Assembly (NCBI GenBank): GCA_030704615.1
Contig: CM060734.1
Location: forward strand, 42,098,001 to 42,162,000
Reading direction: 5' to 3'
DNA length: 64,000 bases
From: Takakia lepidozioides
Taxonomy: Eukaryota; Plantae; Bryophyta
Shown here piece by piece: positions 11,711 through 64,000 of this stretch (position 1 is its first letter; every line of letters begins with the position of its first letter). The position numbers were made by a program, and so were the translations under genes. Below the pieces are notes generated by a model that had not been told where the DNA came from, made no database searches, and worked only from the letters and a program-made list of their open reading frames with translations.

Positions 11711-14190
11711 CTATGAAGAGATAGGTTCATATGGGTATGAGAGCCAAGGATGTTTCAGGGCCTCGCTAGCAGTTGGACGAGTGGTGGAGTTGATCTGCAG
11801 AAGGTAGCCCATAAATTCTGTAAAACATTGGTCACCCATGGGCAGTCGATGAGCCAGGGATGTCTTCTTTGGCAGCAGGTACTCCAACTGGTCCGTATCC
11901 TGATATACACACATGGCCTATGAATGAACAGATGTTGCTAAGACAAGAATGTCATTTGATCTGGTTTGCAGTGGTGGTGCGTAAACAGTCCAGAGAAAGA
12001 AGATCATGAATTACTAGGGTGCTGGTTGTCGAGACCACCCCTGCAACTATGGAGTCTGTTACCACATGGGGGATAGGACGTCATCAACATTTTTTGAGGT
12101 CCTCAATCCACTTGGTCACAAATCTACAGTACGCAGCCAGTCTCTCTGCAGGTCATGTGAGCAAACCCAAATCTGCTTGGTACTTTCAGAATCCTTCTGC
12201 ATGATTTAATGCAAACCATAACCTCTTGACACGGGACAACACGGAGTTGACCACCTGAGAAACTACGGAATTACCTGATTCCGCTCATAAAGCATGTGGT
12301 TTTTGGTGAAGAATTTGTGTGTGTCACGCCCTTTTGATAGGAGCTCTGGGTCAATAGGTCCCAGAATGCCTACCACTCGTGCTAGAAGTGTGGCCAATGA
12401 ATCATTTTGGAACAGTACCTGTGGAGACCACACTGGTGATGTTACTTTTCACATTGCCAGAATTTACGATGCTTTTAGAACCATGTAGCATACTGACATC
12501 AGAGTACATCTACATACAACATGTGCTGCACATGAAGCTGCTTAACACTAACATGATGAACCCTGAAGGACATGTTGGCATCCACAAACAACAAATTACG
12601 ATTACCGACACGTAAAAGCACCTGATAAGCAGTCTGTTCACAGGGGTAAAAGAAAGGACTCACATTCCCAGAGCAAAGCTCTGCAATGATACAACCAAGG
12701 GACCACATGTCAATCTTTTGGTCATAGGGAAGACCCAGAATAACTTCAGGTGCCCGGTATGACCGTGACTGCACGTAAGAGCAGAGGTGATCGGTCTGGA
12801 AGCAACTACTGCCGAAGTCAATCACTTTGACTTCACAGCGACTGTAGCTCTTCACCAGAATGTTCTCGGGCTTCAAGTCACAGTGAATCAATCCCAGCCC
12901 ATGGATGAACTCCAACGCTTCCAAACACTGCCGTGTTATTGACTGTTCCACATCACCCTGATTAGGTTACATCAACCTAAAGCCTTTCTACAGAGACTAT
13001 GAAATGATAGGACAGAAAACCAAGGACACAACGTATGTGGGAGAAAGAGAGAAGAACATCAAATGTAAAGGGTTACATGGTGACACAGTTCCACATGAAA
13101 AGACTCCTAGTGTCCGTAGGAGACGGCCTGCCTCATGCAGGTAAGCTGCACTTCTGGTCCTTAAAAGCCAAAGGCTTCTGCAAAGGACAAGGTATCTCTA
13201 AAGGAACAGTACTATCCGCCCTTCATCATAGTATGGAGGGTAGGAGAGAAAGAAAGGATGATCTATCTCCATACACTTGGAAAGTCCTACCCTCACAAGG
13301 TGTACTAGGCCAGTGCCCTTGCAATATGTAGACTGCTAAACAACACAAACCCTCAAAAGGGGGGTGCAGCACGTTGGAAAAGGTAGGAGGCATTTATTGC
13401 AGGAACCTTCTCAGATCCTCACCAATCCTGCTCTTGTCTTGCTTGTCAGGATATACATTACATCCAGTAGAGCCTAGGCGGCCCATGAAATATATGTGTG
13501 TGTGAGAGAATGTACTCATAAGACGTTTGCCGTAGTCTTGTGGCCATTGACCCTGCGCCCAGTTTGAGCAGAACACAAAGGGACAGATACTACCTTTGTC
13601 AGGGGCTCACGCCGGCAGTATGACTTACCTTGATCCGAGTTTTCCAGATATCCTCTAGAAATCCCTTTACACAAGCATCAATCTGACGTGTGTGATTTGC
13701 CCAATAACTAGGCCCCAAAAGGGCCTGGGCTTTTGGCTGCGTGTGTGAGAGAATGTACTCATAAGACGTTGTTTGCCGTAGCCTTGAGGCCATTGACCCC
13801 GCGCCCAGTTTGAGCGGAACACAAAGGGACAGAACCTACCTCTGTCAGGGGCTGAAGTTGGTAGTAAGACTTACCTTGGTATAAAGCATTGATCCGGGTT
13901 TTCCAGATATCCTCTAGAAATCCCTTCACACAAGCATCAATCTGCTGTGTCTGGCTTGCCAAATAACTAGGCCCCAGAAGGGCCCGGGCTTTTGGCTCAG
14001 CCTCCTTTCAAAGTTGGTAAACAGAGGTACAGGCACAATTCCCTTAATAGATTTGAGGAGAGCGTCTCTCTGGTGAGAGAACCCCGGACAGTGAATCAGG
14101 AAATGAATATTGTCTTCGGGTTGCCCACCCAACGGGCAATTGCACTCTCCCTTTCCTCTCTGCTTCTGTTTGCTGTTCAAAGGTAGACTC

Positions 14191-43712: not shown

Positions 43713-46700
43713 ATGGCAGACTCGCGCCCTGTCCAGCCGAGGGCTAGAGGTACGAACTTGTTCAGGAAGAATTGTGCGATTTCGCTCTCCTCCTGGAAGG
43801 AGGTTATTATATATCAACTTTAGAGTCGTTTATCTTTTGAAATGTTCGCAGCACTACGTTAATCTTGCTCATGGCATTGCCATCCATCTGTCGTAACCCA
43901 AATGCTTGGGAAATACACCCTCTTCGAGTAAGGTAGACATTCGTATGCTCGTCATTTTTCTAGTCGCCAGTTGTGGAAGGAAGGAAAATCTGAGTGCATC
44001 TAAGAAGTCGCAGCAATAGAGCTGATTTAGTAGGATGTCGAGTTGAGAATGGGTTAAGGTGCAGAAGGTCAAGCGCTGAACCCTGGGACCACTTCATTCG
44101 AGGCTGGTACGTGAATGCCAGTTATTGCTCTTATAGAGATTAGAGAAACTTGGGGGTTCTGCACTTTGTTTCTTCGGTTTCTGTCTAAGCCAATTCATCC
44201 CAGTTGTAACTTTAAAGGGGAGTTTTAGGTTAGGGCATTAAACAGATAGAATGAACCAGGGTGCAATGTATTACATGCCTACCAGGTCGACAGGTTCGCT
44301 CCCTGGTGCCCAGTATCAGTCAGACTGAGGAAGAAGTCAGCGACGCCGGAAACCACGGCGCTGGCATAAGCAAAAAACGGGGATCTTTGGTATGTCACTC
44401 CGGCAAGCTGACATTCGTCCAGCGTTAGAGCTACTACTTTCCAGAATGCGCTCCCTCTCAAGGACCCTTGTCTTTGTATGAAATAGGAAAAAGAAAGAGA
44501 GCCCACAGATGAAAAAGTTTACTGCGTCAGATAGAGTGCCTCAGCTGCTAATTGAGCAACAAAGAGAGGATAGAAGGAATTGTTGTTTGTTATATATATA
44601 TAATGTACTCGTTTGTTTGCCGTAGCCTTGTGGAGAGAGAGAGAGAGAGGAAGTCTTCCCTTTCTTCCCCCACAAAATGAATTAAAGGAAAGGTTGAATG
44701 TAGCACAATACATTTGATATTTCTGCTGTGTAAAGACTGATTCCTCTAGTCTGTTGTGTGTTGGGAAACAGCAATAGAGCTGAAATTACTGCTATGTGTG
44801 GTAGATTGAAGCTGTCTTTTGGGTGTCTTTTGCACAATGTTGATGCAGGCTTTACTGGATTATGACAGTGTTCTAGATCCGAGGGTTATGGTCCCATACG
44901 AGACAAAAGTTGGTGATGTCCTGCGGAGAGTCGCAATTCTAAGGTTCAGAGCTATTTCCTTTTCTACAGGGGAAAGTTGCACTGTTAGTTGCTTTGTGCT
45001 GTACAGACTATATTTTCTGGTTGGGTGGCCTGAGTTTGTTGCAGCTGCTTTAAGGTATGTCACAGTACTGTAATTGTGTGGTGTTGAAAACAAGTACAGG
45101 AAGAAAAGGTTATATGCAAGACAAGACATTGCTGAGCTGTTGAGGAAAGAGGCGTTAATCCCTGAGGACATTGTGATGGATGGAAGAAAGGGGAAGCTTC
45201 CGCTCTACCTGTTTGACAATGAAGATTATGAGACGGCTGCCCCCTCACAGTGGTATTTGTTCTCTTGTGGATAACATGGAACTGAGTGTGTGTGAAGTGA
45301 TGGGATAAAGGCTATACACAGTCTTAAGGATCCCCCTTTCTTTCTTAGGACGTTATAAAGCACCATTTCATTTCATTTCTTTAAACTAATCAAACTTACC
45401 CATAGTTAAGATCATTTGATACATTTTGACCGCAAATCGGGTGTTATAACTTCCTTTGGAGGATGTGGAAGGTTTGCTGCAATGACTTATAGGGACATGA
45501 GGCAAAGTAATCTTGGCTAGTGTTTGGACCCTTTAGTTTTACTTTTCGAATAAAGGAAAGTATGGCCTATGATAGCCAGGGTAGTCCCAGTTTTCAACAT
45601 ATCCTCAGAGTTGACATTACCTCCGTTATCTGTCCTTTATCAGGGTTGACAAGGTTACCAAGGTTCCTGCGCAAGCATCCTTTTTAAATTTTGAGGGTAC
45701 AACTGGATGGAAGCCATGCATCGTTTTTGACTACCTTGAAGAAAGCAACACATATTTGGTGCAATGGGATGACACTGGGCAGACTGAGTGGTTACCAAGG
45801 CAATTTTCTTGCATCTCTCACACTTCTTGCTATTCGTTCCAATCTGAGTTTGTGCATGCAGTTCTCAAGTCACTTGATGCAATTGTGGAGGAATGTGTGT
45901 GTCTGTTATCATGTACCAAACCTAATATTCTTTAAAGTCAAGAGGTGTCGGCGGTTGGTAATTAAGCACAGGTGTGAGACTGAGGACATGGTTCAATGAG
46001 ATGATCAAAGGGTGCAGGATCCAGGTACACTTTCAAGCAGAAGATCCTTTCGTGTTTGTGAAGCGAGTTGCTGATGCTGTCTCGGCCCGTATTCAGGCGG
46101 AAAGTATTGTGGTACACATTTTCTCTCCGTCTTGTTTTGAGTCAGACTCTCCTGTCCACTGCTGGCATGTGTGACAAGCTCTTGCATGTTTACACTGTGA
46201 CTTGGAACAGTGGGTTTACAAATTTGCAATCATGTGCAAGTTAATATATTAAGTAGGACTTTTGGTATGCAGCTGTATACTACCATTCACTCCAACATTT
46301 TGAGAGTCAATATAACCTTGTCATGAAGGTTGCATCGCACAGGGTTGATTGTCAAGACCCATGTGATGATGTAGCTTTACACCTTTTAAGTACCATCTAT
46401 TCGTCAGTCTATTCCTGCCCTTCTAAGTGCAAGTGCTGATGGTCCAAGATCCTCACACTGACCTCATATTGAGCAGCCAGTTAGCGATACAGGGTTTAAT
46501 ATCAGGAGCACGGAGTACTCCTTGGCTCATGAGGCTGAATTAGACAGTTGCGCTTCTAAATTGCAATTAATTTTACTATGGCTGCTTGTGAGTTGAGCTG
46601 TGATCTTTCCTTTCCTCGCAGGAATACAACCACTATGTTGAGTATATGCCAATAGATGATATTCCACTTCTTACTGTAGAACAAGAATCTCGGATCAGGA

Positions 46701-49700
46701 GTCTAACTTTCAACACAAAAGCCACAAAAGAGAGGAACCAGGATGTTACGCAGTTGTTGAGTGAAGCGAACCTGGAATATGCCCACATGATGAACAAGAT
46801 TCTATTTGATGATGGCCAACTCCCATGAGAGAGTTTCTGGTGAATTTAGACATGCCAACCCCGGCATCAAAAGAGAAGGAATTTGTCCCACGGTATATTT
46901 TTGATATGACTCTAGTTTTCTCCGGACTGTGTGTGCTTCACCTGTATTACTATACACCTTGAGTTGTTTCTTTATTCAATCTTTGTTCTTGATGTACATA
47001 AGTATTCTCAAGCGTCTCGAAAAAGTCAGATGGTTTATTAGAACAGGTGAAACTAGAGACCATCCACTGAAGAGAAGGATAAGAAAAGTTTGTCCACTAG
47101 AAACCCGAGGATGTAAAGACGAGATATAGGAACTGTAGAAAAGAATTTGCTCATAAGAGGTTGTTTACCTTTAGCCTTGTGTCCATAGGACCCGCTCCCA
47201 GTTTGGGCGGAACAAGTGGGAACAGTCACTATGTCTGTGAGGGGCTCGCTCCACCAGTGGGACTTACCTTGATATCAACAATTGGTTTGGACTTCCAGAT
47301 TTCCTCTAGAAAGCCCTTCACACAATCATCAATCTGTGATCTGCCCAGTAGTTATCTCCCAACAGGGCCAGGGCTTTAGGTTCATCCACTAGATAGTGTA
47401 GAGAAAACTTGTACTCATAACTCTTTGTTTGCCGTAGCATAGATACTGTAGGAAAAGAAAAAGAGAGAAAGAGAGCAATATTTTTACATGTCCACAGGAG
47501 GCCCAATAGACACATGTAGAACCACACAGTAGAAACCACAGTGTGACTGAGGAAGAAACAAAGCAGGAAAAGAAGAGAAACTGCGTTTGCACGAGGCCAG
47601 GAGAAATGAAATGAAATGAAATGGTGCTTTATAACGTCCGCGGAAAGCTCGTAGAGCTTATGGGACAAAATGGAAGAAAACATGAGAGAGGAACAAATCC
47701 AGAAACCACAATTAATGTTCTAGCGATTGTCTAAGGGTGAAGGCCTCGTGTAGGTAGGCTGCCACGCATTTTTGATCCTCGTAGTGAAAGACATCAGTGA
47801 GAGTTTGGGTTCCACTGAATAAACAGTGAAATCTCCCACGGATCTCGTAGTATAGAGGGCAGTAGAAGAAGAAGTGTTCTTCAGTTTCAATTTCCTTGCT
47901 GCGCCCTATGCAAGCTGGACATAGGCGGTCCTCCCGTTGCAGGTTTTCCCATCTGCCAGTCTCTATCCGTAGGTTGTGGGAACCCACCCTGAACCGCCCC
48001 AATGCCCTCAAGAGGGAAGGAGATAAGGGTGCTGAAAGGTAATTTGGTCTCAAGATTCTATCATCGCGGAGCACCAAGAATGTCTCTCGATAGAAGTGGA
48101 GCTTTGTCGTGAGATTGGGTAGCATCCAAGTTCTCTTGACATGTAATTCCATAAGCTCTCTCCGAATGAGTCTGTTGCGGTCATGTCTGGATGTGATGTC
48201 CACCTCATCTGGGTTCATTGGTAATAGGAAAGCAGTAGAAAGTCCGTTACGTTGAAATAAACTGTCCACTCGAGCATACCAGGAGTTCCTGAAACCTGCA
48301 GCTTTGAGCCTCATAGATGTTGTGAGGGCCCTTGCCACTAGCCCTTTGGGTGGAAGGGCCTGCAATCTATGGAGAAAGATTGTAAGCCTGAAGAGGGCCT
48401 CGGATTGCAATGGTACACATGCGAACTCTGCACCTAGGATCTGAGATGGAGTTGTGCTCCTGGCGCCAAGCATTGCTTGGAGAAAAGATGACTGTAATGG
48501 TTCCAAATTCTTTTCCCACCAGGAGACAGGGACACCAGGTGCCCAGAACTCACAACCATAGATGGTAGCAGGGCTGACGACGGTGTCAAACAGCCACTTT
48601 TTGGTCGGGGGATGCCGCAGATGTATTTGCCTGCATTTGGCCTGAAGGCTGACGGAGGCCGCCTTACCTTTAGTCAACCTGTCCAAGGCAGTGGCTGCAA
48701 AGTGAAACTTGGGGGGGTGGATAACCAGACCTAGGTACCGGTATGATTTCACAATCTCAATTTCCTGCTGGTTGAAGATGAATCTACGATCAGCCTGGCC
48801 ATTGAAGACCATGATCTTGGTCTTGCTAAGATTGACCTGCATCCCATAGTCTTTGCAGAACTGTTCCAAAATTTTGAGATGGCGTTGCAGAAAGACCGGG
48901 GAGAGAGAGAGAGGATGTCTGTCATGCAGGTAGAAAGAATGAAGAAACCACTATTACAATAAGTTTCTCCAGTCTGACACATGTGGCTGTATCTGCACCT
49001 CAGTCAAGAAAGAGAGAGAGATGGAGATTGTGTACTACTTAATTTGCTTTTCTTGGGAGATGAAAGAACTACCCTTTGACACCATATCTAACGTTTGAGC
49101 ACTGTTGGTTTTTCCCTTTCAGATCTGGCACAGTAACTATTCCCGAATATGACTATGAAGAGCAGGCAAGTGAGTTCTCTTTTACGTCCTGTCTCACAAG
49201 GCCAGAGGTTATCATCGCCACTTCCAAACTGAAAGCTGAGTGTGACAAAGTGTTGAAATTGGCAATTTTGAACTGTCTCTTCACAAAGAGTCTGCGGTTT
49301 GAGCAAATGCAAACCCAATCCTCTGAAACTGCTGCATCACATTTGAAAGAAAGGTGGATGTTACTAATGCACTTTCTCTATATTCCTAGGTGTGAAGGGA
49401 TTTCTAGAGGATATCTGGAAAACCCGGATTAATTCTTTATATGGAGGTAAGTCTTACTACCAACATCAGCCCCTGACAGAGGTAGGTTCTGTCCCTTTTG
49501 TTCCCGCTCAAACTGGGCGCGGGGTCAATGGCCACAAAGCTACGGCAAACAACGTCTTATGAGTACAATCTATATTCCTAGGTGAGTCATACTACCGGCG
49601 TCAGCCCCTGACAAAGGTGGTTTTTGTCCCTTTGTGTTCCGCTCAAACTGGGCGCAGGGTCAATGGCCACAAGGCTACAGCAAACAACGTTATATGAGGA

Positions 49701-52700
49701 CATTCTATATTCCCAGCTATGGAAAAGTGTTATGAGTACATTCTATGCTCCAGCTCTCTGCCCTCCTGCACACAACCCAGGGGTCGAGTTTTCATGCGGA
49801 CAAGTGCCTCTGTGAGCGCCTTAATGGCAGTTGCGGGAAAATAAGCTTATATGTGCAGCTGAGCTGCAGGGATAAGCTAAACCCTGGAGGGTGCAAACCT
49901 CACAAAAGGCTCCGGGAGGGTTAGATTCCCGCGGGGTCAATGGCCGTAAGGCTTTGGCAAGCCAATGTACGCAGGGAACGAAGTACATTCTATATTCCCA
50001 GCTCTTAGCCGTTGGTCCCCCTTTAACCATTGACATTGCTTAAGGTAGGGTGTTGGGTGTGTAACTTGGATGTTAGGCCACTTCTTAGCAAGTCAACATT
50101 CTGGGTCTAGTGGACCTTGAAGGTTTGCGACTGAGAAAGAAGGCTTTGTGGACCCTGGACAAATCTCCAGAAGGGATGGTTGATGCTTGTGCTTCTTTTT
50201 TTGCAACTGCCCCCCAGTGTTGGCCTTATTGCTTGTGCTTCAATCTATTCTTGAAGCTTCATATCGTGTTTTCCGAAGGTTTCTTTTTTGGCCATTGGAA
50301 GGGCGGTAGCCTCTTCTTTTGCGTTGTTGGTTGTTGCTGTTTCTGGGTCTCCTCAACTTTGCTGCTGTATGATGTGAAAAAATGTTATTCTGCAGTTTGA
50401 TATGTGGGGTAAGTCCCCTTTCCTCTGAATATCTGAAAAGAAAAGGAGGGAAGGGCTGTTTTTCCTTTCCTTGCAGAAACCAAATATGCGAGAGAGTGTT
50501 TATGGTGTGGATTTGTTTTGTAGTGCTAATTTTACATGGAATGTTATCCACACAGCTGGACACTGCTGATGAAGTACGTACTAAAGTCATCCTTCAAGGA
50601 TGCAGGGAAGGGGTGGTTCAACACAAGCGAAGCAAGTTTGGATGCTTACAAGTGCAGCAAGATGAAACGATTTTTACGGATGGTGAAGTATATGATGGAA
50701 GATTCATTGCGTCTATTGACTGAGGAAATGGTGGAGAAGTATACGGTGTTTATTGAAAGGCACTGTGGTGCTCCACAAGTAGAGGTTATTGACCCCATCA
50801 AAGTCACCTGTGAATGGCCCATAAATGATTTTTCTGCGGTACGTCTTCAAATACAACCTTCTTAGTTGTGTCTATATCAGTATGTTTCCATGTCTTGGTG
50901 CATTGTTGTCTTAGGACTCCTAGTTTGTATTGAGCTTGTGTTCCAGCTCCCATTGAGTGTACAGTGGCATGGACCTCTTCAGGCCTTTCGTATCGGCTCT
51001 TTTCTTTCAAGGTGGTTGGCTTTGCAACTGTTCTTTGGTGATGCTACAATAATGATTGACATTCTTCTTGCCAAGCTAGGTGCTAAAGTACGAAAATTAG
51101 GAGAAGAAGAGATACTGTTGCCAACCTCTCTCATATTGTCGGTTTTCTGTTGATGCTTTCAATGTTGTGTGCGTGTGACAGATGATCAAGAAGCCACCGC
51201 TATTTTCTTTGGAGATTGTGATTGGGGAAGGTGGAGTATTTGAGTACAACACGGTAATTAAAAGGTTTGAGGAAGTCACAACAAAAGCAGTTGATAACTG
51301 CATCACATGTCTCCAATCGGTTCCGGAGCTGGAGGCCCTCATCATGGGAAATCTGAGATGGAGCAAAAATCAAAACATCTCATCAGTTCAACTGCAAGAA
51401 CCACTCATTTGCACACTGAAGGCTCGTGTGCAGGTTCTCTTTCACTCATGCTCTCTCTCTGGAAATGCTTAGCATGTTACCTGACGTGGCACTCCACCGT
51501 CATGCAACTCTTAACGTTTCAGTTGCTCTTTAGTTGCTTTGGTTCTCTGTGAGTCTGTGTCATTCTGCTTGTTCTTTGAAAGTTCTTCTTCACCGTGTAT
51601 GTTGCTTCCTCATTGTATCTTTGGTTACCTCCAAAACATGAGTTCTGAGTTACTAGGGTGTCTCATTGATTTTCCATTTACTCATTTCCCTTGCACCCTT
51701 TGCACCTGCAGTTTGAATCAAAGCAGTTGGTCTAAAGACCTGTTGCTATGCTAGGGTCGCCAAGCACTGCTTGTGTATTGCATCCCTACTGTGACAAAAC
51801 CGAGAAGGTTGGAAATTTTTCCAAACATGACCGCAACAATATAGGACAGGAGCTGATCTAACTTCTTCATATTTAGTGGACATGGAAACCACAAAATCTT
51901 ACAACAAAACTGCACATCTGCCATGACACTGTCCTGGTCCTACATGATGGTAGAATCTTACAGCCCGACTACTTGTCAGTCAACCCTATGTCCAGCTTTT
52001 CTATGGGCATTGGGAAGGTTCAGGGTGGGCCACATGGCCTGCAGATAGAGACTGGTAGATATGACAACCTGTAGCCTGCTGACCTGCTTGCACTAGAGAT
52101 GACAGATAGAGTATTGATCCATCGTTCATGTTACTGTCTATGCTGGGACAGTCAATCCCTTGCTGAGGTTTTTCTCTTTGAGGACCCAAAATGCTTGGCA
52201 GCATCTACATGAGCCTCTCCACGTTCGAGAATATTTTGATTTCAATATGCAGTTGTTTTGAGCTGTTTGTTGTGGGCCACATTTTTTCTTGTATCATGGT
52301 TTGTTTTAACCCAAAAGCTCTTTGAGCTTTTCACGGGCATTATAAAGTGCCTTTTCATTTCCTTTATCAGATGTATTCAGTTATGAAGACCTGAAGTGTA
52401 TATCTGCACAAGGCACTGTCATATTCCTTCTTTCCTTTGCGTTTGAAGCATATGTGGGCCTTGGAGTTTAATTCAGCCACCATGTTTCCTTGGGTGGTTG
52501 ACTACTAGTTGGGCTTTATTCTCTGGTGCTACTTTCCTCTCGCGGAGAGGATGTCACACAATTTTTGAGCGATATTTTGTAGCAGCAGTAGATGGTCCTA
52601 ACTGTGCCTGTATATCTTTTGCTGATTTTTGGCTGGGCAATATGGAGAAGGTGAGAGCTATGATCAGAATGCATCGAGAAATGTGAAAAAGCTGTATGTT

Positions 52701-55700
52701 GGGATGTGTAGGTTGCAATGAGAAAGGCAATGGCAACAGCAAAGCTATACCTGGAGCTGTTCACTACATTCGAAGATTTTATCAAGGTGGATTTGACAGA
52801 ATACAAGGCTGGCTTAGAGGCTCGTAAAGCAACACTCAAGGACCTGGTTACAGAGGGTCACATCCACAAATGTGACACAGATCTTTTGGATAAGAGGTTT
52901 GCAGTCTTACCGATTCCCTGATATTCCATAAACCAGTTGTATTCTCATATTGTACATGAAGTCATTCAAGTTGGCCCTTGACATTCTCACACAGCTAAAA
53001 CCAGGATATGCTTATGGTAATCAGGAACTTGCAGTTATTTGATTTAAGAAACTGGACTCTTTTTTACTTCAACCCATGTAGAAAATCGCCTCAAGGAAAG
53101 GCCTGGCCCCATTCCTGATTAGTATGGAGGAGGTTTAGTGTGGTAAGGTTTCTCTTCAGAAACCTCCTAGTCCAATTTCCAGAAGATGTATCATTGACAT
53201 TGCCTTTACTTTTTCTATCCAAGCAACTTAGGCAAACTGGTTTGTCGTTGACAGATCATCTCCTTTTGTGTTGGTACAGTGAATACATCTGTTTGTTGGT
53301 GCAGCATCCCAAACTTGATTTCATTTGGCTGCTTTCAAGTCACGTGCAAGAAGATCCGGACATATTTGCTGACCAAAAAGCAGCAGTTGACTGATATAGG
53401 TACGTTGTACTTCTCAGCACATATAGTGAGACCACCGAGGCCTAGAGCTGCTGAACCAGTTACGAATTCAACTAGACTGCTCTCATCTTTCGTCTTCCCA
53501 AATCAGAGCGTAAGTCATATCTTGGTTTTGGAATGTTTATTTTGGTCCCAGGACATTAAACTGGCTGCATCATCTGCCCCTCCCGTAGGGATCCTTCTGT
53601 GATCGTAGTGAAACAGGGTGCAGTTTGAAGTGCCCTCTAGATCAATCCATGGAGATAAGAAGGTAGCGTCACTAGTGGAGAAGGCTCCTTCCAGGACGAT
53701 GGCGCCCCTCTACCGGTCTCCTCCTCTGCCTCCTTTGTGACCCTTTTCTGCTGTCTCCAAGTCATGAGATTTGAATCCTCTACCAGACCTACAGCCGTCT
53801 AAGGACTTCAAATATTCTGAATAGTCCCCTTGCAGTTTTTAGCATTATATCAACCACGCCAAAGCTTGAAGGCAAAGATATAGGGATGCTGAGAATGAGC
53901 GCTATCATCCCAGGTTTGGTCACGGTTGAACTGCGCAGTTCTTGTCTAATCTAAGTTCAGTACACGTTGTTCCCCGGTTATAGTGGCTCATAGTGTTCCA
54001 ATGCCCTGTAATTCTGGGCTTCGCTCCATTCCTGTCTGTGTCCTGGATTTTGCAAAGATTTATCTCTTCAAGGTGATTTGCACTGGCCTTGTTTATTCTG
54101 GCCCAGTTTCTTGCAGATTGTTTTGTGGCTCGCCATGAAAACACCATTCAGGAGACTAGAGAGGGAAATGAAATGAAATGAAATGGTGCTTTATAACGTC
54201 CGCGGAAAGCTCATAGAGCTTATGGGACAAAATGGACAGGAAACCAGAGTCAAAGATAAGAATATAAGAGGGAGAGATTTACAAATCCACGAACTTAGAA
54301 AGGGTCGAAGTGTCCTGCTGTGGAACCAGTGGGTATTCACAATCACCTCTCAGACTGGAGCCCCCTATGTTAAAGAAAATGTTCGTCCTTGGGAGACACT
54401 GTCTCCCTGGGGATTCCCTGCGGCACCAGGCCTCTAAGCTTCACGGCATGGAGTGCCAGGGCTAGGTAGACCCTTCAGAGGTCCTCATCCATGTCACAAA
54501 CTGGAAATAAGTTCAGGATGTGCATAATTTCATCTTGTTCAGGCTTTCTTTGTGCTTTTGGCATCGCCTTAGACACTTCAGCCTCCAAGCCAGCTTCATG
54601 TAGCAGGTCAGTTCTTCCTGCTTGATATTTAGGTACTTGAAAAATCTCCTCTACCTTTTCCACCAGGACTTGGCCTGTTTAACAGGATGGTCTTGCTTCC
54701 AAGAAATAGAGTCAATCTTCTTTGGGTATCTGGTATTAGGCACACGATTCAACTGACCCTACCATCTGACCTTGAACTGGCACGTCGAGAGCTGAAGGGC
54801 GGTATGCCAAACTTGTCCAAACAGCCACGTTAGCTGTTCTAGAGCATGCTGATATGCTCTCTTTGTGCACCAAAAGCTGAATGAATTCTAAAGTTTTAGC
54901 ATGGTTGGAGTTGCCAATCTACACGGGGGATGTGTAGTCCAAGGTTGGCCTAATAATGTATGATGGTCATTTTAACTTCAGGATTAATCCCATGGCAGTA
55001 GAAATTTTGTATAGGCGCATCCCAGTTACAACTGGAGGAAAACTCAACTCCAAGATATGTGGTAGGACAGGAGCACAGGAATCTCTTCAGCCCCATGTTC
55101 ATTTGAGCTTCAGCGATTTCAGGAGAACTGATTGGCACGTTGTATCCCTCCTTGATATACTCCAGTTCATCAGGGCTGTCTTGGATCGTAGGAACAGTTC
55201 TTTCTACTGTATGCCAGCATTCTTTAGAAAACCCCTCACTATCAGAGCTACATTCACGGCCAAGAAGGCTGCTGTGCACTTCAAAGGTTGTCAGAATGTC
55301 AACCATAGAAGTCACCACTGCACTGCTGTTAGGAGTTAAAGCGTGTACTTGCTGGCCTTGTTTTGGTCTCTTCAAACTCTGTACGGCCAACCAGAATCGT
55401 TTATCATTGCCACTGGGGTGGTTCAAGTTAATGTCACGGTACAACACTTCTTAATACATTTTCTTCTGAGTGTTTACTAGGTTATTTACGTCTTTTTTGT
55501 GGCTAGTTATATCTTGCCCACAGCTCACTGTCATCTTTAGGAGTCCCTTGAAAGCGCCTCTCTCGGCGAGTGAGCTTATTGGTCAACCTATTCCTAGTTT
55601 CCTTCCTACGATCTTATGAGCCACAGAAGTGAGGAAACTCTCCCAAGAGTCCACAGTGCTTTTGACCTCGCTTCTTGCATCACCCAAGCAAGAGGGGAGA

Positions 55701-58700
55701 TCTTGGAGTGATTGTGCGGGAGATCTTGAAGTGCGGGAGAGCCTCTTGCATGGGCTGGACATATTCTTTCTTGACCTCTTCCCTCCGGAATTTTTATATG
55801 GGCCAGTTTGGAATTGAATATCTCACAGATCTCTTAGATTACACCTTTTGATCTCAGTCGAGACAAGAAAGTGGTCAGAAGTACCAATGTCAGTTCTATC
55901 ATCTATGATATAATCCACAGTGGACTTTTCCCCAGTTTGGGTTTTTTCACTAGTCCACTGCAAAGGTGACCTATTGTTCAAGGTCAAAAGTGGAAGCTCT
56001 TCCGGGCAATTGATAAGTCGCTTGGCGTTGGAACTCATCCTCGGCAGAAATCCCAATGGTGTCGTCCTGTCGTACCTGTCGTAGACCCTTGCCCACCCAG
56101 GCATTTAAGTCTCCTATCAAGACCACGTGGCCTTTGGCGAGGAACTTTGGACAGTCAAGCTTAGCTTCTTGGAGGGCTTTATCAGCATCCATACTAAGGT
56201 GCCTCTCCTCATTCTTGCAAAATCCCTTCATCCCAAATGCAGCACATGGCACAATCAAACTCTATTCCTGGGCATCCAAAGATGGCAGGCAGTCCCCTCT
56301 ACATAGTCATGCTTGGCACCCGTAATGACGTGCCTTTCTACAGATAGATTCAGAGCCATAGTCCATGCACAGGCCAAGTCCCAAAGCAGCTCACATTCCT
56401 CCCATCTCTGTGGAAATTGAACTTGCGATGAACTGAGGTGAACTGAGATTTTGGAGTGGTCTGTGAAAATGACCAGGGAGCAGCTGAGGAGCCACAGTCT
56501 GAACCCTCTCAAGTACCTTGCAAACTCTAGGGAAAAGACCTTGCACATCCTACTCATGCCCTACTGGTTGCCCAGATTACATTCTTTTATGCTGAATTGC
56601 GCAAAAGACAATTCGGAGCTTTGATCCTATGGCACACACAACATAACGACCCCAAAAAATTACTTTCTAGATGCATTGTGTGTAGTCTTGCGAATGAAGA
56701 TGAAATGTTCCTGAAGGAAGATTGGGAGAGTATCCATGCAAGAGTAGTAGGTACAGGACGTGGCGAAGGCAAAGGTAGGAAACCAGACACTGTCACTGTA
56801 GCCTTGTTTAAAAGAACTCTGGGGTTCTGCGGATGTTTGTACCCGCCAAGTGAAGACATGTATCTCATGCCACCTGGAGCTAGGAAACCTCAAGATAAGC
56901 GTCGCACTATCGTTGCAATGCGCAATGTAACCAGGTGTAGCCATCAACCTGCCTTTGGCAATGCTGGCTGCTATTGCACCTGCGACTTCTGTTGTATGGA
57001 CCATGATTGAACTCTCTAGAATCCATTCAAGTGGGGGTGCTTAAGGAGTGTATGTCAGCATGCTCCAAAACAGCCAATGTGGCTGTTCGGGGTGAGTTTG
57101 GCATTCCGTCCTTAAGCTCCCGACTAGATGAATTCAAGGTCAGATGGTGGGGTCAGCTGCAACATATGCCCAACACCAGATATCCTAAGTTAATCGACTC
57201 TATATCTTGGAAACAGGACCGCCCTGTCAAACAGGCTAAGTCCTGGCAGAAGAGAGTAGAAGAGATCCTCAAGGACCTGGACCTGGATCCGCAAGTCTTG
57301 ACCCTGCTGGATAAATCTGACTTAGAGGCTGTAGTGTCCTCAGCCATGTCTGTTGCCATGAGATTGTCTGATGAAAATGAAGTTAGGCAGAAAACTTCCC
57401 TGAACTTGTTTCCAGTCTGTGACATGGGGGAGGACATCTTGGATGACCTCAAGGGTCTACCCACTCTCGGCACTAGACTGAAATTTAAACTCAGGGCAGG
57501 AAGCCTACCTTTGAACAGCAAACAGAAGCAGAGAGGAAAGGGAGAGTGCAATTGCCCGTTGTGTGGGCAATCTGAAGACAGTATTCATTTTCTGATACAC
57601 TGTCCGGGGTTCTCTCACCAAAGAGACGCTCTCTTCAAATCTATTAAGGGAATTGTGCCTGTACCCCTGTTTACCAACTTTGAAAGTCTCGAGGCTGAGC
57701 CAAAAGCCCAGGCCCTCCTGAGGCCTAGTTTTTGGGCAAATCACACACAGCAGATTGATGCTTTTGTGAAGGGATTGCTAGAGGATATCTGGAAAACCCA
57801 GATTAATTCTTTATATGGAGGTAAGTCTTACTACCAACGTCAGCCCCTGACAGAGGTAGGTTCTGTCCCTTTTGTTCCCGCTCAAACTGGGCGTGGGGTC
57901 AATGGCCACAAGGCTACGGCAAACAACGTCTTATGAGTACAATCATGATTGAACTCTGTAAAGTAGGGAGTAAGATCCTTAGGGTGCCCCATGTATATCA
58001 TCTGTGGCAAATTGTCAACAAGTCCCAGAATGCGATCGCTTGGTTGATGGACAGGCATCTGCAATGTGTTTAAGAGTCTTGATGACCATGTGTGCACTTG
58101 TTGAATTGTGACCTTCATGGCCAATGACTGTATTTCCCACCCTCTCAAGACCGAGCTGCCGATTCAGACTGCTGACTCTACCTTTTTTTGCTCCTTTACT
58201 ATGGCTGGGAGGTATCTGCACATCAGCAGAGTAGCATGCATATACCATTTTCTTGTCATAGGTCTCGGTCTACCATAGTTCAAAGAGTGAATATGTGGTC
58301 AAGAGTGGATCGGTTGCGCCGGAAGCCTGCCTGCCCAGTAGCGTGAAGCTGAGAGGTTTCAGCCCATCAACAAGTCCTATGGCCATGACTGACCCTAAAC
58401 AGTTAAGCCAGATGACGGCCATAGCTTGTGATTTCACTCGATGCGTCAGCACAGTGTTGCTCTAGGCCCCCCTGTGAGGGTTGAATTTGTAAAGGGTCTT
58501 AGGGTCCAATGTGGAACCTGTAGGGAGCCTGTACGAGCATTGAAGGAATGGCATTTTACAAGTCACAGAGGCCGAAGGAGAGACGACTTTGTCAGTTGAT
58601 ATTATAGAAAAAGTCACCTTAGATTCATGCTATGAACCAATCTCATTTTTTTGGAATGTATGCAGGTTGAACGTATCTCATTTGAGGCCCGTGAGATCCA

Positions 58701-61700
58701 AACTGAACTCCGCCAGGCTGAGGAACTTACCCGTATTTTCAACTCCCGGGAGATGCTTTTTGGTTCTCCAACCACGGATTACAGCCGCCTCAAGAGGGTT
58801 GTTGAACAGTTTGAGCCTTTCCACTACTTGTGGACTACAGCAGATGATTGGAAACGGCTGCATATCAGCTGGATGAATGACCCCTTTGAGAATCTGGACC
58901 CCGAGGAAGTAGAGAACAATGTAGCAGGCTGGTGGAAAAGGTTGCTCAAATACCACAGAGAGTTCAGCAAGCGGGATCTTGAATTTCAGGCCAATTTGTG
59001 CGATTCCATTCGTCAAGAGGTGAAAACATATGACCTTTAAGATCTATCAACATAGAGAGAAATGAAATGAAATGTAGTGGTACAGAAAGAAATGAAATGC
59101 AATGGTACTTCATAACGTCTGCCAAAAGCTCAAAGAGCTTATGGGGCAAAAGAAAGAAAGAAACAAGAAAGAAAATAAAAGAAATGAAATGGTGCTTTAT
59201 AACGTGTATGGAAAGCTCATAGAGCTTATGGGACGAAATGGAAGAAAACATGGGAGAGGAAACAAAACCAGAGCCAAAAATAAAACTATTGCTCGAGTGA
59301 TTGTCTAAGGGTGAAGGCCTCGTGCAGGTAAGCTGCCAAGCATTTCTGATCCTCATAGTGGAAGACTTAAGTGAGAGATTGGGTTCTGCGGAATAGACAG
59401 TGGAATCTCCCACGGATCTCATAGTTTCAATTTCCCGGTTGCGCCCTGTGCAAGCTGGACATAGGCGGTCCTCCCGTTGCAGGTTTTCCCATCTGCCAGT
59501 CTCTATCCGTAGGTTGTGGGAGCCCACCCTGAACCGCCCCAATGTCCTCAGGAGGGAGCCCCCACAAGCAGAGAAAGAGAGAGGGAATGGAATGGAATGG
59601 TGCTTTATAATGTCCGCGGAAAGCTCATAGAGCTTATGGGAAAAATGGAAGAAAACGTGAGAGAGGAAAGAGAGAGGGAGCCCCCATAAGCAGCCCAATT
59701 GAAAGAGGAAGAGAGAAAAATAGAAAGAAACTGTACAACTTTATAATAGAAAGGAATGAAAGAAGGTATGTTATGTTGTAGGGGACATCGTAGGAGTGTT
59801 TGTGACAAGAGGGTACAACAAGCAATCATTGTGTTGCTGCTTGAAGATGGTGTACCTCGTGAGAGGTACAATCATAGATTGTTACCTGAAATGTTGGCAA
59901 TGGTATACACTGGAAGACATACTTCCTGTAGAATATTAACCCTCCTGGAGCTGGTTGTTAGTTATACCCTCAGGGTATTGAACTGTGCCCAAAAATGCCA
60001 TAGTACTTGCACACAGGTGGTGAATCTGGTGACAGCAGAGTGTTAATTATTCAAGAGTTAATATCAGCTACTGCTACTTGTGGCTGTGGTTGCATCTGCC
60101 AGTGACTCTGGAAGGTAGAGAAGAGAAGAGGAAGAAGAACTGTTTTTGTGTCCACTGCAGGTCTGAGTGGCCGTTTGGACAAAAAGGGAGTACCAAGTAA
60201 TGAACAAAGGAGAGAAGGAAAAGAAAGAGGAAATAAAATCTTAACATCTACAGGGGCCCCTGAGAAGTATACAGGGGGACCTCAAGGACCCATGAGAAAT
60301 GAAATGATATGAAATGAAATGAAATGGTACTTTAGACCCATGAGAGAAAGTAAAATGACTACAAAAGAACTTAACGCTGTTCTCATAGAGACCCTAAGGA
60401 GAGAGTACTTCATGACAAACCAAAGCACTAGAACTACATTGCTTCATGGAAACGGAGGCCTTATGAAGGAAGCAACCTGGAGAGGAAATCCCTGTTGTTG
60501 TGATCAAGGAGTTCATAAGATTAGATTTGCGATGGTTCCCCTTTTCCCTGCGAAACCAAACCTGAATGTGTTGAGCACCATGACCTCGGATGTTGGGTAA
60601 GGTGGGTGATTTGTGCCTATGATAGCTGCAATGCGCCAAAAAGGAATACGAGACCGACACTGGGACCAAATTTCAAAGTCACTGGGATTGGATGTACACC
60701 CGAATCAGGAGTTCACACTGACAACAGCAATTGATTTGGGTCTTTTGGATCGTCTGGAAGTTTTGAATGAGGTTGCTGAACTAGCAAGCAAGGAATATAG
60801 TATTGAAGTAGCATTGGAGAAGATGGAGGAGGAGTGGAAGAGCCTTGAGCTCCAGGTATGAGTCCCTCTGCGCCCAATGTGCTATCTGTAATCTGAGGAT
60901 TTGGTACTGCTCAGAGGGCATTTGCTTTTTTATACCGTGTTTCTTTGTTGGTCATTTTCGTTCCATAGGTCCTTGGGGTCCGGTGGAGGTTATAGAGTGT
61001 TTTCCTTTCCTTCTTTCCAGTGTTCTTGAGCATGCTTCAAATGGTGGCCTATAATATTTTCATGGGTTGGCTATCTCAGATGCACTGATGTTCTCATGTT
61101 TCTTTTTCAGACTTCTCACCGTTCTAGGCCACTTGTCTGTAAGGTTCTTCTAGGTGGGTTAAGCAGCATGCTAGTAGAACGAAATCTGTACTTGCTGGAC
61201 TTCTTATTGGTTTGGCTTGCTTTCTGAATGCCTAAGAATTGAAAAGGTTCTCATCATGCTTTTTATGTTACGAGTCATATTCTAGTATAATTGTAGCAAA
61301 GTAAGGAAAATGTGGTCTAATCGACATGCCTGAGCCGTCACAGTGTGATAGGGTGGACGTCTACAGCAAGATTGAGAGACTTAGGTGTGTGTCATAACTT
61401 TCTGGAAGTCCTACTGATTTTGAACATCGATAGGTTAAGGTGTGGATGGTGATCTTACTAGTGTCTTTTGCAATTTTCCAGATTCAAGCATACAAAGACA
61501 CTGGAACGTACATAATGAAAATTGAAGAAGCCACACTGCAGCAACTTGATGATCACATTGTGTTGACCCAGTCAATGAGCTATTCTCCCTTCAAAAAGCC
61601 ATTTGAAGATCGAATTGCCAGGTGGGAGGCATCCCTGGTTCTAGTGTCAGAGACAATAGATGAGTGGCTAAAGGTCCAGCGGCAATGGATGTACTTGGAG

Positions 61701-64000
61701 CCAATCTTCAGCAGTGGAGATATCCAGACCCAGCTTCCCATAGAGAGCAAACGGTTTGGGACTGTGAATATGATTTGGCACAAATCGTTGGCTCAGGCAT
61801 TTAATACTCCTGGAATTCTTACCATGTGCAACAGCAAAAAGCTGCTCCAACAGTGCACCGAGTCTAACAGGGTTCTCTCTTAAATCTATCTTTTGTCCCC
61901 GTCGATCTAGCTTTAGTTCTTTTGTTTGTATGTGTGGCTGTCCCATACGCTATTTGGGCTGATTGTGAATGTTAGTGACCAAATTCTTTCTACTTTGTCC
62001 CATGGGGCCACCTGTGAGCATTTTAAAATTGTTCTTTGTTTCTAAGAGCTTTCCGCGGACGTTATAAAGCACCATTTCATTTGTTTTCCCTTCTTTGTTT
62101 CCCTCCAGTGCATTTCATAAAGTTGTTATTTCTTTTTCCGCTGTGCAAATCATTGGTGCTTTTTTGATGTTTTCCAATGTGCTTGGTTCTTGTGGCCGCT
62201 TGTGGACATTACAAAGTTTCTTTATTCCCTTCTTTCGCCCCAGATCAACCTTTATAGGCTGAAATTGTCGAGCACTTGGTAAGCCAGGAAATGCTAGCGG
62301 TGGCAGAGGTGGACACCACGAGACCACCTTCGACATAGTCATGGCACGAATTCTATGGGCTAAAGTTGTGAAATAACCATTTTCTCCTAAGATTCTGGAA
62401 ATGTTTGTGGTAGTATTTATGTGTTTACAAAAGATTGTTCAGATGAGTGTTTCTCACTGGAGTTTCCTTGGGGTTTGCAGTTGATTGATCTAGTGCAAAA
62501 AGGTCTTGCGGACTACTTGGAGACCAAGAGACTTGCCTTCAGCCGTTTCTTCTTTCTTTCCAATGATGAGCTGCTCCAAATTCTGTCGCAGGCGAAAAAT
62601 CCTCTGGCTGTGCAACCTCATCTGCACAAATGTTTTGAGGCTATTGAAAGGCTAGACTTTGAGACTGACCTGGAAATACTTGCTATGAATTCTTCAGAAG
62701 GAGAGAAGGTGAGTCAGGGTGAAAGTAGCAAGCACATATGTCAGTGTGTCTGGTATAGCCACCCTTGAGAAAACTGTCAAGTCCAATGGAGAAAGCAGAA
62801 AGAAAGATGGAACCTATAACATTCACAGGGGGAATGGTATAAATTTACAGAGAAGAATTTGATGTGTAGGACTACTAGAGAAAATTGGAAGTGGGTAGGG
62901 GGAAACCCTAAAGGAGAACAGAAAGAATGAAGGAACCGTATAACATCCACTGGAATCCAATAGAGTTGACGGGAGAAGACATTATAACAAACAAACAACT
63001 ACCATATGATGCTTAAATTGCAGAAGAGGAACAAGGGAGTTTATTATGTCCTCAGGAGAGGGAGAGCCACATTGTTGTAGGTGTCCCTTCCAGCTAAGCC
63101 GTTGTGGATTGGATTGCAGATCCCATTTCCATCAAGCATGTATCCAACTGGAAATGTAGAAGTGTGGCTGAGTCAGGTTAAGCAGAAGATGAAGGGAAGC
63201 ATCCAGGTATCCCGAAGCCAAAATTTCTCCTTGGGATTCTATTGATCTTTGAGTGTTATACTGTGCACTGTTGGAGTGTTGTCCTACCGGGATAGAGAGG
63301 AGTTTGCTAACATCACAAGAAGGTAGGAGTTGAATACATTCAGTAGATCTTGACCTTTTAGGAGTTTTGTGTGCTCAGAGCTGCAGCCTTTTTCATAGTT
63401 GCTTACAATTTGATGAGAGGCTTTTGCAATCCTTTCCCTTGCGCTGAGAAAGCCCCTTGCAGGAAATGCAGGTGCCAATGCCAGCCATCCCATGGTGCAT
63501 AAGTGACCTTTAACTTGGACCATTGTTGATTTGATCCCAATACCTTCTGGAGTTTGGCCGTTGTGGCCTGAATTTTGCTCTCTTAGGTAGAAACTCACTT
63601 AATCCATCAGAGGTTTTCATCTTAAATTGGTTTTTGAAACGTTTTGGTATTTTTCTGGTCCTATAGGCCTTTGCCCTCTAGTGCACATCAATTTTATATT
63701 ATTTTTCTGTGGTCTTTTGTGTATGCAGATCAAAGTATCGCTCCAGGCCTACAAGTCAGTTCCAAGGACACAATGGGTGCAAGAATGGTCGGGGCAGGTG
63801 GTGCTTTGTGGAAGCTCAGTGTATTGGACGGCCGGAGTGGAACGTGCCATCAACACATCAACCATGCAAGCCTTTTTTGATGATGTACAGGTCAGTAATA
63901 ATTCCATCAGACACCCAGAAACCGAAGTGGAAATTGAATTGGCCTGGAGACTGTTTGAATTTCACACAATGCCATCCAATGTATGGAGTTCTTCAAACAG
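43713..64000 (+). CDS. DNAH1: Axonemal inner-arm dynein heavy chain, DNAH1-like (tail and linker; continues beyond the window). Contains frameshifts; possible pseudogene
   Basis: Exons: 43713-43749 and 44286-44389 (both tentative), 44849-44943, 45100-45252, 45644-45799, 46018-46111, 46622-46892, 49123-49353, 50556-50838, 51182-51433, 52712-52896, 53305-53399, 53836-~53890 (partial), 58666-59019, ~60602-60855, 61482-61871, 62481-62708, 63120-63206, 63729-63890. DNAH1-type N-terminus: RKKRLY..DI..LL, LPLYLFDNEDYE, RIQVHFQAEDP, LTRPEVI, GKGWFN. General dynein heavy chain motifs: GIRDRHW, QRQWMYLEPIF, RFFFLSNDELLQIL, VQPHLHKCFE, NVEVWL. Confidence 0.88.
47160..47440 (-). mobile_element. Diverged LINE family B 3' fragments
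   Basis: Contains the EPKALALLGDNYWADH / GFLEEIWK segment and the CTACGGCAAACAA..TTATGAGTAC terminus. Confidence 0.7.
47600..48893 (-). mobile_element. LINE family A (RTE-X-like), 5'-truncated; RT thumb, CCHC domain and (CATTT)n tail
   Basis: Uninterrupted 385-aa ORF 47712..48869: VNLSKTKIMVF, YRYLGL, IYGCEFW, RFRVGSHNLRIETGRW...CPAC...ETEEHFFFYCPLY. The 3' UTR ends GCACCATTTCATTTCATTTCATTTC. The clade assignment is inferred from motifs. Confidence 0.9.
49390..49997 (+). mobile_element. Stack of LINE family B 3' fragments plus a structured SINE-like element
   Basis: Successive units end GTAC(A/T)ATCTATATTCC or close variants. A TCTATATTCC-like sequence recurs at ~49377, 49569, 49703, 49742 and 49989. 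Confidence 0.8.
52170..52365 (+). mobile_element. Old LINE family A 3' fragment
   Basis: EDPKCLAA.LHE segment followed by a degenerate AAGCTC..GAGCTT..TTATAAAGTGCCTTTTCATTTC terminus. Confidence 0.6.
54165..54250 (-). mobile_element. LINE family A 3' terminus
   Basis: (GAAAT)n GGTGCTTTATAACGTCCGCGGAAAGCTCATAGAGCTTATGGGAC. Further short copies at ~45348, ~62045, ~60296 and ~1355. Confidence 0.8.
54475..56258 (-). mobile_element. Internally deleted, degenerate LINE family B copy with APE endonuclease
   Basis: AP-endonuclease motifs GHVVLIGDLNAWVG, STVDYII and GTSDHFLV. RFWLAVQSLK and PISSPEIAEA lie in the pre-RT region. 54475-54900 is homologous to 57016-57450. Confidence 0.8.
57016..57943 (+). 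mobile_element. LINE family B, 5'-truncated, with perfect 14-bp TSD
   Basis: Open ORF2 C-terminus (VRGEFGIPSL; KFKLRAGSLPLN; [19 protein letters not shown]) runs almost to the 3' end. TSD CATGATTGAACTCT at 57002-57015 and 57944-57957. Confidence 0.92.
59058..59660 (-). mobile_element. Three stacked LINE family A 3' fragments
   Basis: Termini at ~59060-59150, 59182-59550 (includes RFRVGSHNLRIETGRW) and 59585-59660. Confidence 0.85.

Follow-up and report, generated by a model that had tools for sequence, protein, structure and literature searches.

Is the gene for an axonemal dynein heavy chain decaying in the moss Takakia lepidozioides, and, if so, what would its decay say about the swimming of the sperm? 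The question is raised by a stretch of 64,000 nt from the genome assembly GCA_030704615.1 (contig CM060734.1, positions 42,098,001 to 42,162,000 of the forward strand), here called the window, in which coordinates count from the first nucleotide and for which an earlier reading of the letters alone (the original prediction) had described a DNAH1 gene in the course of becoming a pseudogene. The analysis supports that claim with three frame-breaking deletions, one of which takes most of two exons, the lack of any in-frame canonical bypass, and the confirmation of one lesion by reads. The locus is most probably a recent, non-processed (intron-bearing), and still partly transcribed pseudogene of a DNAH1/DHC2-type heavy chain.

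A dynein heavy chain of the DNAH1/DHC2 type

The plus strand from 44843 to the window end holds the N-terminal third of an axonemal dynein heavy chain, approximately the first 1260 codons, in 17 colinear exon matches recovered by tblastn with the Sphagnum, Marchantia, Calypogeia, and Physcomitrium orthologs (Table 1). Searches and alignments were run exon by exon, exon borders were set by GT/AG pairs preserving frame and length, and the identities, tree, and invariant-site counts were based on columns of high-scoring segment pairs (HSPs) anchored on the window. The linker domain DHC_N2 (PF08393) was identified with Pfam in exons 12, 13, 14, and 15 (profile positions 1–62, 79–161, 164–291, and 294–368; E 6e-10 to 3e-42). 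Tested on exon 14 alone, the class is that of the single-headed inner-arm heavy chain known as DNAH1 or, in Chlamydomonas, DHC2: the best matches in the PDB were human DNAH1 and Chlamydomonas reinhardtii DHC2 (8j07, 9fqr, and 8glv; E 1e-40 to 1e-46), with DHC2 of 8glv at E 1e-45 and human, mouse, and pig DNAH1 at E 1e-40 to 1e-42. The match to DNAH7 was much weaker (E about 1e-32), as were those to DNAH12 and DNAH3, and the outer-arm and cytoplasmic classes reached E 1e-19 or weaker.

Full-length orthologs were obtained from a HMMER library search and from word searches seeded with its matches for Calypogeia, Marchantia, Sphagnum, Physcomitrium, Marsilea, Adiantum, Diphasiastrum, Selaginella, Mesostigma, and green algae, such that the ortholog is kept in all of the flagellate land-plant lineages sampled (liverworts, Sphagnum, Physcomitrium, ferns, and lycophytes). 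The nearest relative of the window gene is the Sphagnum ortholog. Over 1104 codons anchored on the window, identity was 58–68% to the orthologs of Sphagnum fallax (BDL97_14G015200; P0278), Marchantia polymorpha (Mp5g13570; P0277), Calypogeia fissa (P0178), and Physcomitrium patens (PHYPA_031000; P0283), rising to 78–87% in exons 14–15, and all four are predicted with open frames, unlike the window copy. In a neighbour-joining tree of this one gene, the window sequence is sister to Sphagnum plus Physcomitrium (bootstrap 92%), which is the place of Takakia in the moss phylogeny given in a published study (PMC13351734, citing Hu et al. 2023). A further sequence, P0001 (SRR33208280/81), matched at 81% identity.

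The intron positions of exons 8–14 coincide with those in two Sphagnum genomic contigs (L003 and L007), and the introns have thus been kept at ancestral positions. These contigs, Ga0209208_10006858 and Ga0116227_10006178 from Joint Genome Institute (JGI) peat metagenomes, represent the nuclear genome of Sphagnum in lengths of up to 24.5 kb, carry the whole exon-intron structure of the DNAH1 ortholog at 92–100% identity to S. fallax, and are useful genomic references for bryophyte gene models.

Deletions and the broken reading frame

There is no continuous reading frame across the canonical exons, which are interrupted at three points (46814, 53875–53907, and 60612). In alignment to 16 orthologs from animals to mosses, there were four deletions in all, each at a site of invariant length, three of which break the frame. 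In exon 5, only gg (46814–46815) stands between an FDD-type motif and PTP, where six of six aligned land-plant orthologs have five codons, giving a net loss of 13 nt relative to the length-invariant alignment. The original prediction held that this exon meets a TGA at 46826–46828 and that the frame joining the next exon is shifted; the entry frame does stop there, at codon 237 of the model, and the conserved sequence that should follow (PTPMREFLVNLDMP...VP) is read in a different frame. In exon 13, the sequence passes from VGD directly to FVPMI with three codons and 1 nt gone, a net deletion of 10 nt at approximately 60612, in a stretch where 16 of 16 orthologs, from sea urchin to mosses, have V-G/E-x-F-x-x-x-V/I-P-L. 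As had been described, the acceptor (ag at 60600–60601) opens on GTG GGT GAT TTG TGC CTA TGA, and there are stops at 60607–60609 in the conserved FVPMIAAMR frame and at 60620–60622 in the entry frame. The DHC_N2 profile agrees with this alignment, with a gap of 16 profile positions filled by just 13 residues.

Two smaller changes leave the frame open. An in-frame loss of 9 nt at 49297 removes three residues (x-D/E-E/D) present in nine of nine aligned orthologs, as had been suspected from a shortened TKSLR-FEQ, and the proline of WPGQ, invariant in 12 of 12 aligned orthologs, is now serine (WSGQ, 63786–63797), a substitution also noted in the original prediction. Single-nucleotide under-calls in the homopolymers ccc and ttt were considered for sites 46814 and 60612 and rejected, with the ortholog alignment giving net losses of 13 and 10 nt.

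The largest lesion, overlooked in the original prediction, has removed most of two exons between 53886 and 58665, a loss of at least 115 conserved codons. All of the orthologs carry a block of ~145 residues between exon 10 and exon 12 (60% identity between moss and liverwort), which is gapless in the 16 orthologs and in Sphagnum consists of two exons, here called A and B (residues 618–681 and 681–761), inside 1.3 kb and at the same intron positions. No match to the missing block was found by tblastn in the whole window on both strands, and a profile hidden Markov model (HMM) of the 16 orthologs recovers only columns 1–32 and 173–214. Only the first 13–17 codons of the exon A homolog (VFSIISTTPKLEG...; 53836–53885) are left, with a good acceptor in the right phase, and the stump runs, with a break of frame, into 11 codons left of exon B (..AENERYH; 53875–53907), a scrap that has a TAG and a 1-nt insertion. 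Compared with Sphagnum DNA, the scrap is identical at 26 of 33 positions, with a weakly significant score of 29 against a shuffled maximum of 24 (local 400 nt). The 4.7 kb after the stump hold fragments of a transposon resembling a long interspersed nuclear element (LINE), with copies at 54162–54905 and 57000–57944, and such fragments occur in other introns of the gene as well; a transposon may have caused the deletion of exons A and B. Sphagnum exons 10–14 occupy ~2.6 kb, whereas in the window the same interval is 8.6 kb long, filled with transposons, and has lost most of two exons. There are no N in the window.

Splicing offers no canonical way around these lesions. An exhaustive enumeration of donors and acceptors returned no in-frame GT-AG pair at junction 4 (exon 5) or junction 12 (exons 12 and 13), and at junction 11 (the stump) only two poor donors, TTG/gtcacg and ACG/gttgaa (the slash marks the exon end), hold the frame, at a cost of ~115 residues. 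Translation of the canonical mRNA would end at codon 237 and therefore yield no tail, linker, or motor. Human DNAH1 and Chlamydomonas DHC2 share with the window gene the DHC_N2 linker and a colinear order over the N-terminal 1250 residues, in which the lesion sites are of invariant length; unlike them, the window copy is untranslatable past codon 237 and is without at least 115 tail residues.

Age, read support, and transcription

The inactivation would be recent, at a neutral divergence under ~2%, because the remaining exons are well conserved and without nonsense substitutions. There were no nonsense substitutions in 1089 ortholog-supported codons, in which each unit of neutral divergence should create ~159 new stops, and the stop count excludes a neutral divergence of 0.02 substitutions per site or more (P < 0.05). 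Identity to the outgroups was within 1–2 points of that of Sphagnum and higher than that of Physcomitrium. Unique changes at universally invariant sites give a mild signal, with 6 of 117 sites changed in the window and 0 of 111 in Sphagnum and Marchantia. Four deletions in 3.3 kb over a short time would roughly fit an ordinary ratio of indels to substitutions.

Read-derived sequence was compared over 58001–64000 using contigs of DNA run X1, which is probably from the assembly's own sample. The contigs are identical to the window over 58313–59145, 59614–60290, 60336–62070, and 62055–64000; they contain introns, have a uniform depth of ~27–29, and cover ~5.6 kb of unique sequence without a difference in base or indel. 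The inspection of reads at 60600–60615 that had been called for is answered by a 1774-nt contig (depth 27), which matches the assembly exactly over the 10-nt lesion. No second copy at 90% nucleotide identity or more and no variant contigs were found in the X1 contigs over 58001–64000. A near-identical recent duplicate is unlikely, because variant contigs are lacking and exons and unique introns are of equal depth. Three small exact pieces within 61425–62237, none of which crosses a lesion, came from an independent ‘plant metagenome’ run (X5). A 228-nt contig of that run at depth 2.4 (61425–61652) has T for the G of the exon 14 AG acceptor at 61481, which may be a further lesion, a polymorphism of the splice site carried by another individual, or an error at such depth.

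Evidence on the transcript comes from a single contig of one run. This contig, 1062 nt long (record 22 of run X6), has exons 15, 16, and 17 (62481–63890) linked precisely at the predicted GT-AG borders with 0–1 differences; being spliced at those borders, it represents RNA, and transcription of the locus therefore includes its 3' part. The transcript has a non-canonical 5' structure, because the 445 nt upstream of exon 15 match nothing in 58001–62480, X6 depth is zero on exons 12–14, and the upstream exon ends in AG, against CAGG at the end of exon 14. A candidate for this junction is exon 8 (end GTGCAG, phase 0), from which the frame would run on into exon 15. Words of the exon 5 peptide, sought among transcripts and contigs of the same species, returned no candidates, and an exact look-up of two open reading frames (ORFs) of the window in public assemblies returned no record.

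Explanations for the broken gene

Taken together, the lesions would abolish the function of the gene. In the proposed explanation, constraint on a DNAH1-type gene would have been lost recently, with four deletions in its N-terminal third; the 3' exons are still transcribed and correctly spliced, on a transcript whose upstream part differs from the neighbouring canonical exons. Several observations weigh against decay. The window ends before the remaining two thirds of the gene, where the motor domain with its six AAA+ modules, the stalk with the microtubule-binding domain, and the C-terminal domain would lie, and read support spans the lesion in exon 13 alone, with reads for which the sample was probably that of the assembly. 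The exon B scrap is a weak match (Smith-Waterman score in three frames, 39 against a null of 24–38; HMM not significant). The gene of Physcomitrium, which is presumed functional, has unique changes at 5 of 116 invariant sites, and substitutions alone do not show relaxed constraint. Lastly, the transcribed and properly spliced 3' exons leave room for a product from a downstream or alternative start.

There is a possibility, smaller than even but substantial, that the pseudogene is real and redundant, with an intact older paralog elsewhere or, if the scaffold is U-linked, a V-linked gametolog, in which case the lesions would be uninformative on sperm motility. The genomes of mosses are often duplicated, genes for male function decay on female-limited chromosomes, and this locus is rich in transposons, all of which would favour such a copy. 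Against it, X1 contigs contain no copy at 90% nucleotide identity or more and exon depth is that of single-copy introns, while the only RNA seen for exons 15–17 matches the window locus with 0–1 differences. Constraint until very recently would be unusual for an old redundant duplicate, and the ortholog in Marchantia bears the number of a gene on chromosome 5.

As for the cause of the decay, the leading guess is relaxed selection on sperm motility; the original prediction had offered a decaying duplicate and an early loss of sperm motility as alternatives, and both are candidates here too. In humans, loss of DNAH1 leads to immotile sperm. Male plants and sporophytes of T. lepidozioides are not known to have been reported, and, if this is so, it would fit relaxed selection on sperm. 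A more far-reaching form of this idea, that the lineage or the sequenced clone gave up swimming sperm and that its flagellar machinery is in the first stage of a genome-wide decay in which the largest genes, the dynein heavy chains, go first, is tentative, with perhaps one chance in four of being right. Related cases are known. The long-propagated Gransden strain of Physcomitrella (Physcomitrium) patens is reported to show male infertility with impaired flagellar function of the sperm (bioRxiv 10.1101/728691). Gransden, as presented there, is a moss kept mainly by vegetative growth, though a laboratory strain compared with a fertile one, whereas Takakia has a multi-deletion dynein pseudogene in a wild-type reference genome. 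Male or sexual traits are also described as decaying in asexual lineages of the brown alga Scytosiphon (PMC11461277) and of Potamopyrgus snails (bioRxiv 10.1101/556357). If male function were unselected, a pattern like that in these two would be expected, namely recent and scattered loss-of-function changes in the male machinery; here there is one gene, from an organism that may or may not be asexual.

It is unlikely that the gene is a unitary pseudogene and only the DNAH1-type inner-arm dynein has become dispensable in the lineage, with sperm still motile on other inner-arm dyneins. Dynein complements do vary between land-plant lineages, as this reading would have it, but the ortholog has been kept in each flagellate land-plant lineage sampled.

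It is very improbable that the locus yields a useful product by skipping exons non-canonically or on a large scale, or by starting internally or at another 5' site, for instance a tail-less dynein in which exon 8 is joined to exon 15 (both phase 0). The X6 contig speaks for it, with a clean join of exons 15–16–17, 445 upstream nucleotides that are not on 58001–62480, and an upstream exon ending in AG, as does the high conservation of the exons 3' of the lesions. Such a product would nonetheless lack hundreds of tail and linker residues that are length-invariant across eukaryotes, the exon 5 frame break would still be upstream, and a tail-less heavy chain cannot dock on the doublet, as is generally understood from dynein architecture; moreover, the case rests on a single contig of one run. 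That the gene is intact in the organism and the lesions are errors of assembly or polishing, or mis-called exon borders, is extremely unlikely: sites 46814 and 60612 adjoin short homopolymers (ccc and ttt) and the read comparison covered 58001–64000 only, but losses of 13, 9, and 10 nt and of at least 345 coding nucleotides are unlike homopolymer slips, a read-derived contig of depth 27 is exact over the 10-nt lesion within ~5.6 kb of unique sequence without a difference, the window has no N, and intron positions matching those of Sphagnum show that the exon borders are not mis-called.

A freshly broken DNAH1 in a genome of bryophyte grade may be a trap for annotation, with gene predictors giving a truncated or chimeric model, or, alternatively, an early marker of male function that is no longer selected. 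Because the inactivation would be recent, the three lesions could serve as convenient markers for the polymerase chain reaction (PCR), to follow when and where in the range the loss occurred and whether it coincides with absent males or sporophytes. If other ciliary genes were found to be alike, the genome of a haploid-dominant plant would bear a rarely seen mark of sex having been lost, for which no comparable case in bryophytes was found in the literature searched, and a genome-wide flagellar decay, if true, would provide a molecular date for the end of sexual reproduction in a moss lineage that diverged early.

Gene model, transposons, and neighbouring genes

The coordinates of the gene model are collected in Table 1. 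Exon 3 has no fitting GT donor and probably uses a GC donor at 45800–45801 (AAG/gcaatt) joined to the acceptor at 46018, because only this donor yields the junction of the orthologs (WLPR-IQVHF).

Table 1. Exons and lesions of the DNAH1/DHC2-type gene in the window; in donor sequences the slash marks the exon end
Feature	Position	Strand	Evidence and remarks
Exon 1	44843..44943	+	ATG at 44843 intact (MQALLDYDSVLDP...); tblastn to Sphagnum P0278 residues 1–31; donor AAG/gt at 44943
Exon 2	45100..45252	+	tblastn HSP, junction search
Exon 3	45644..45799	+	No fitting GT donor; tblastn HSPs, junction search
Exon 4	46018..46111	+	tblastn HSP, junction search
Exon 5 (lesion 1)	46622..46892	+	Net 13-nt deletion; no in-frame junction possible (junction 4)
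Exon 6	49123..49353	+	9-nt in-frame deletion between 49297 and 49298
Exon 7	50556..50838	+	tblastn HSP, junction search
Exon 8	51182..51433	+	tblastn HSP, junction search; ends GTGCAG, phase 0
Exon 9	52712..52896	+	tblastn HSP, junction search
Exon 10	53305..53399	+	tblastn HSP, profile HMM, junction search
Two-exon stump (lesion 2)	53836..53907	+	Start of exon A fused to exon B scrap
Interval expected to hold the rest of exons A and B	53908..58665	+	LINE-like transposon fragments instead
Exon 12	58666..59019	+	Start of DHC_N2 linker domain; exact X1 DNA contig 58313–59145
Exon 13 (lesion 3)	60602..60855	+	Net 10-nt deletion; exact X1 contig 60336–62070, depth 27, 0 differences
Exon 14	61482..61871	+	Most conserved exon, 78% identical to Sphagnum; DHC_N2 profile positions 164–291
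Exon 15	62481..62708	+	Spliced to exon 16 in RNA contig record 22 of run X6
Exon 16	63120..63206	+	RNA-supported
Exon 17	63729..63890	+	RNA-supported; P to S at 63789–63791; gene runs past window end

The transposon fragments within the dynein introns at 59200–59800 and 62001–62200 belong to an extremely abundant family, with an X1 word depth of ~200,000 at 59201–59400 compared with ~28 for single-copy sequence, and are abundant in the RNA runs X6 and X7 as well. Many of the copies end in a gaaatgaaatgaaatggtgctttataacgt-like motif, which is also present at 54170, 59590, and 60300. The introns additionally contain long ORFs resembling the tail of a LINE-like retroelement at 47712–48869 (minus strand), 57007–57936 (plus strand), and 58964–59698 (minus strand), which share their 3' ends, as in a peptide found at both 49392–49562 and 57007–57936. 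The label ‘LINE-like’ derives from sequence character and copy number only, and a Pfam search of ten large ORFs, including 47712–48869 and 57007–57936, returned no family at E 1e-3.

Two neighbouring genes, both named in the original prediction, are marked by motifs on the minus strand. A DNA-methyltransferase motif I (LSLFDGIGG) at ~36500 marks a DNMT gene, near which a simple pattern scan detected no SPCN/PCQ motif IV, perhaps split by an intron. The second, at ~12800–12900, is the core of a DYRK-type kinase (... VIDFGSS) and marks a DYRK-type gene.

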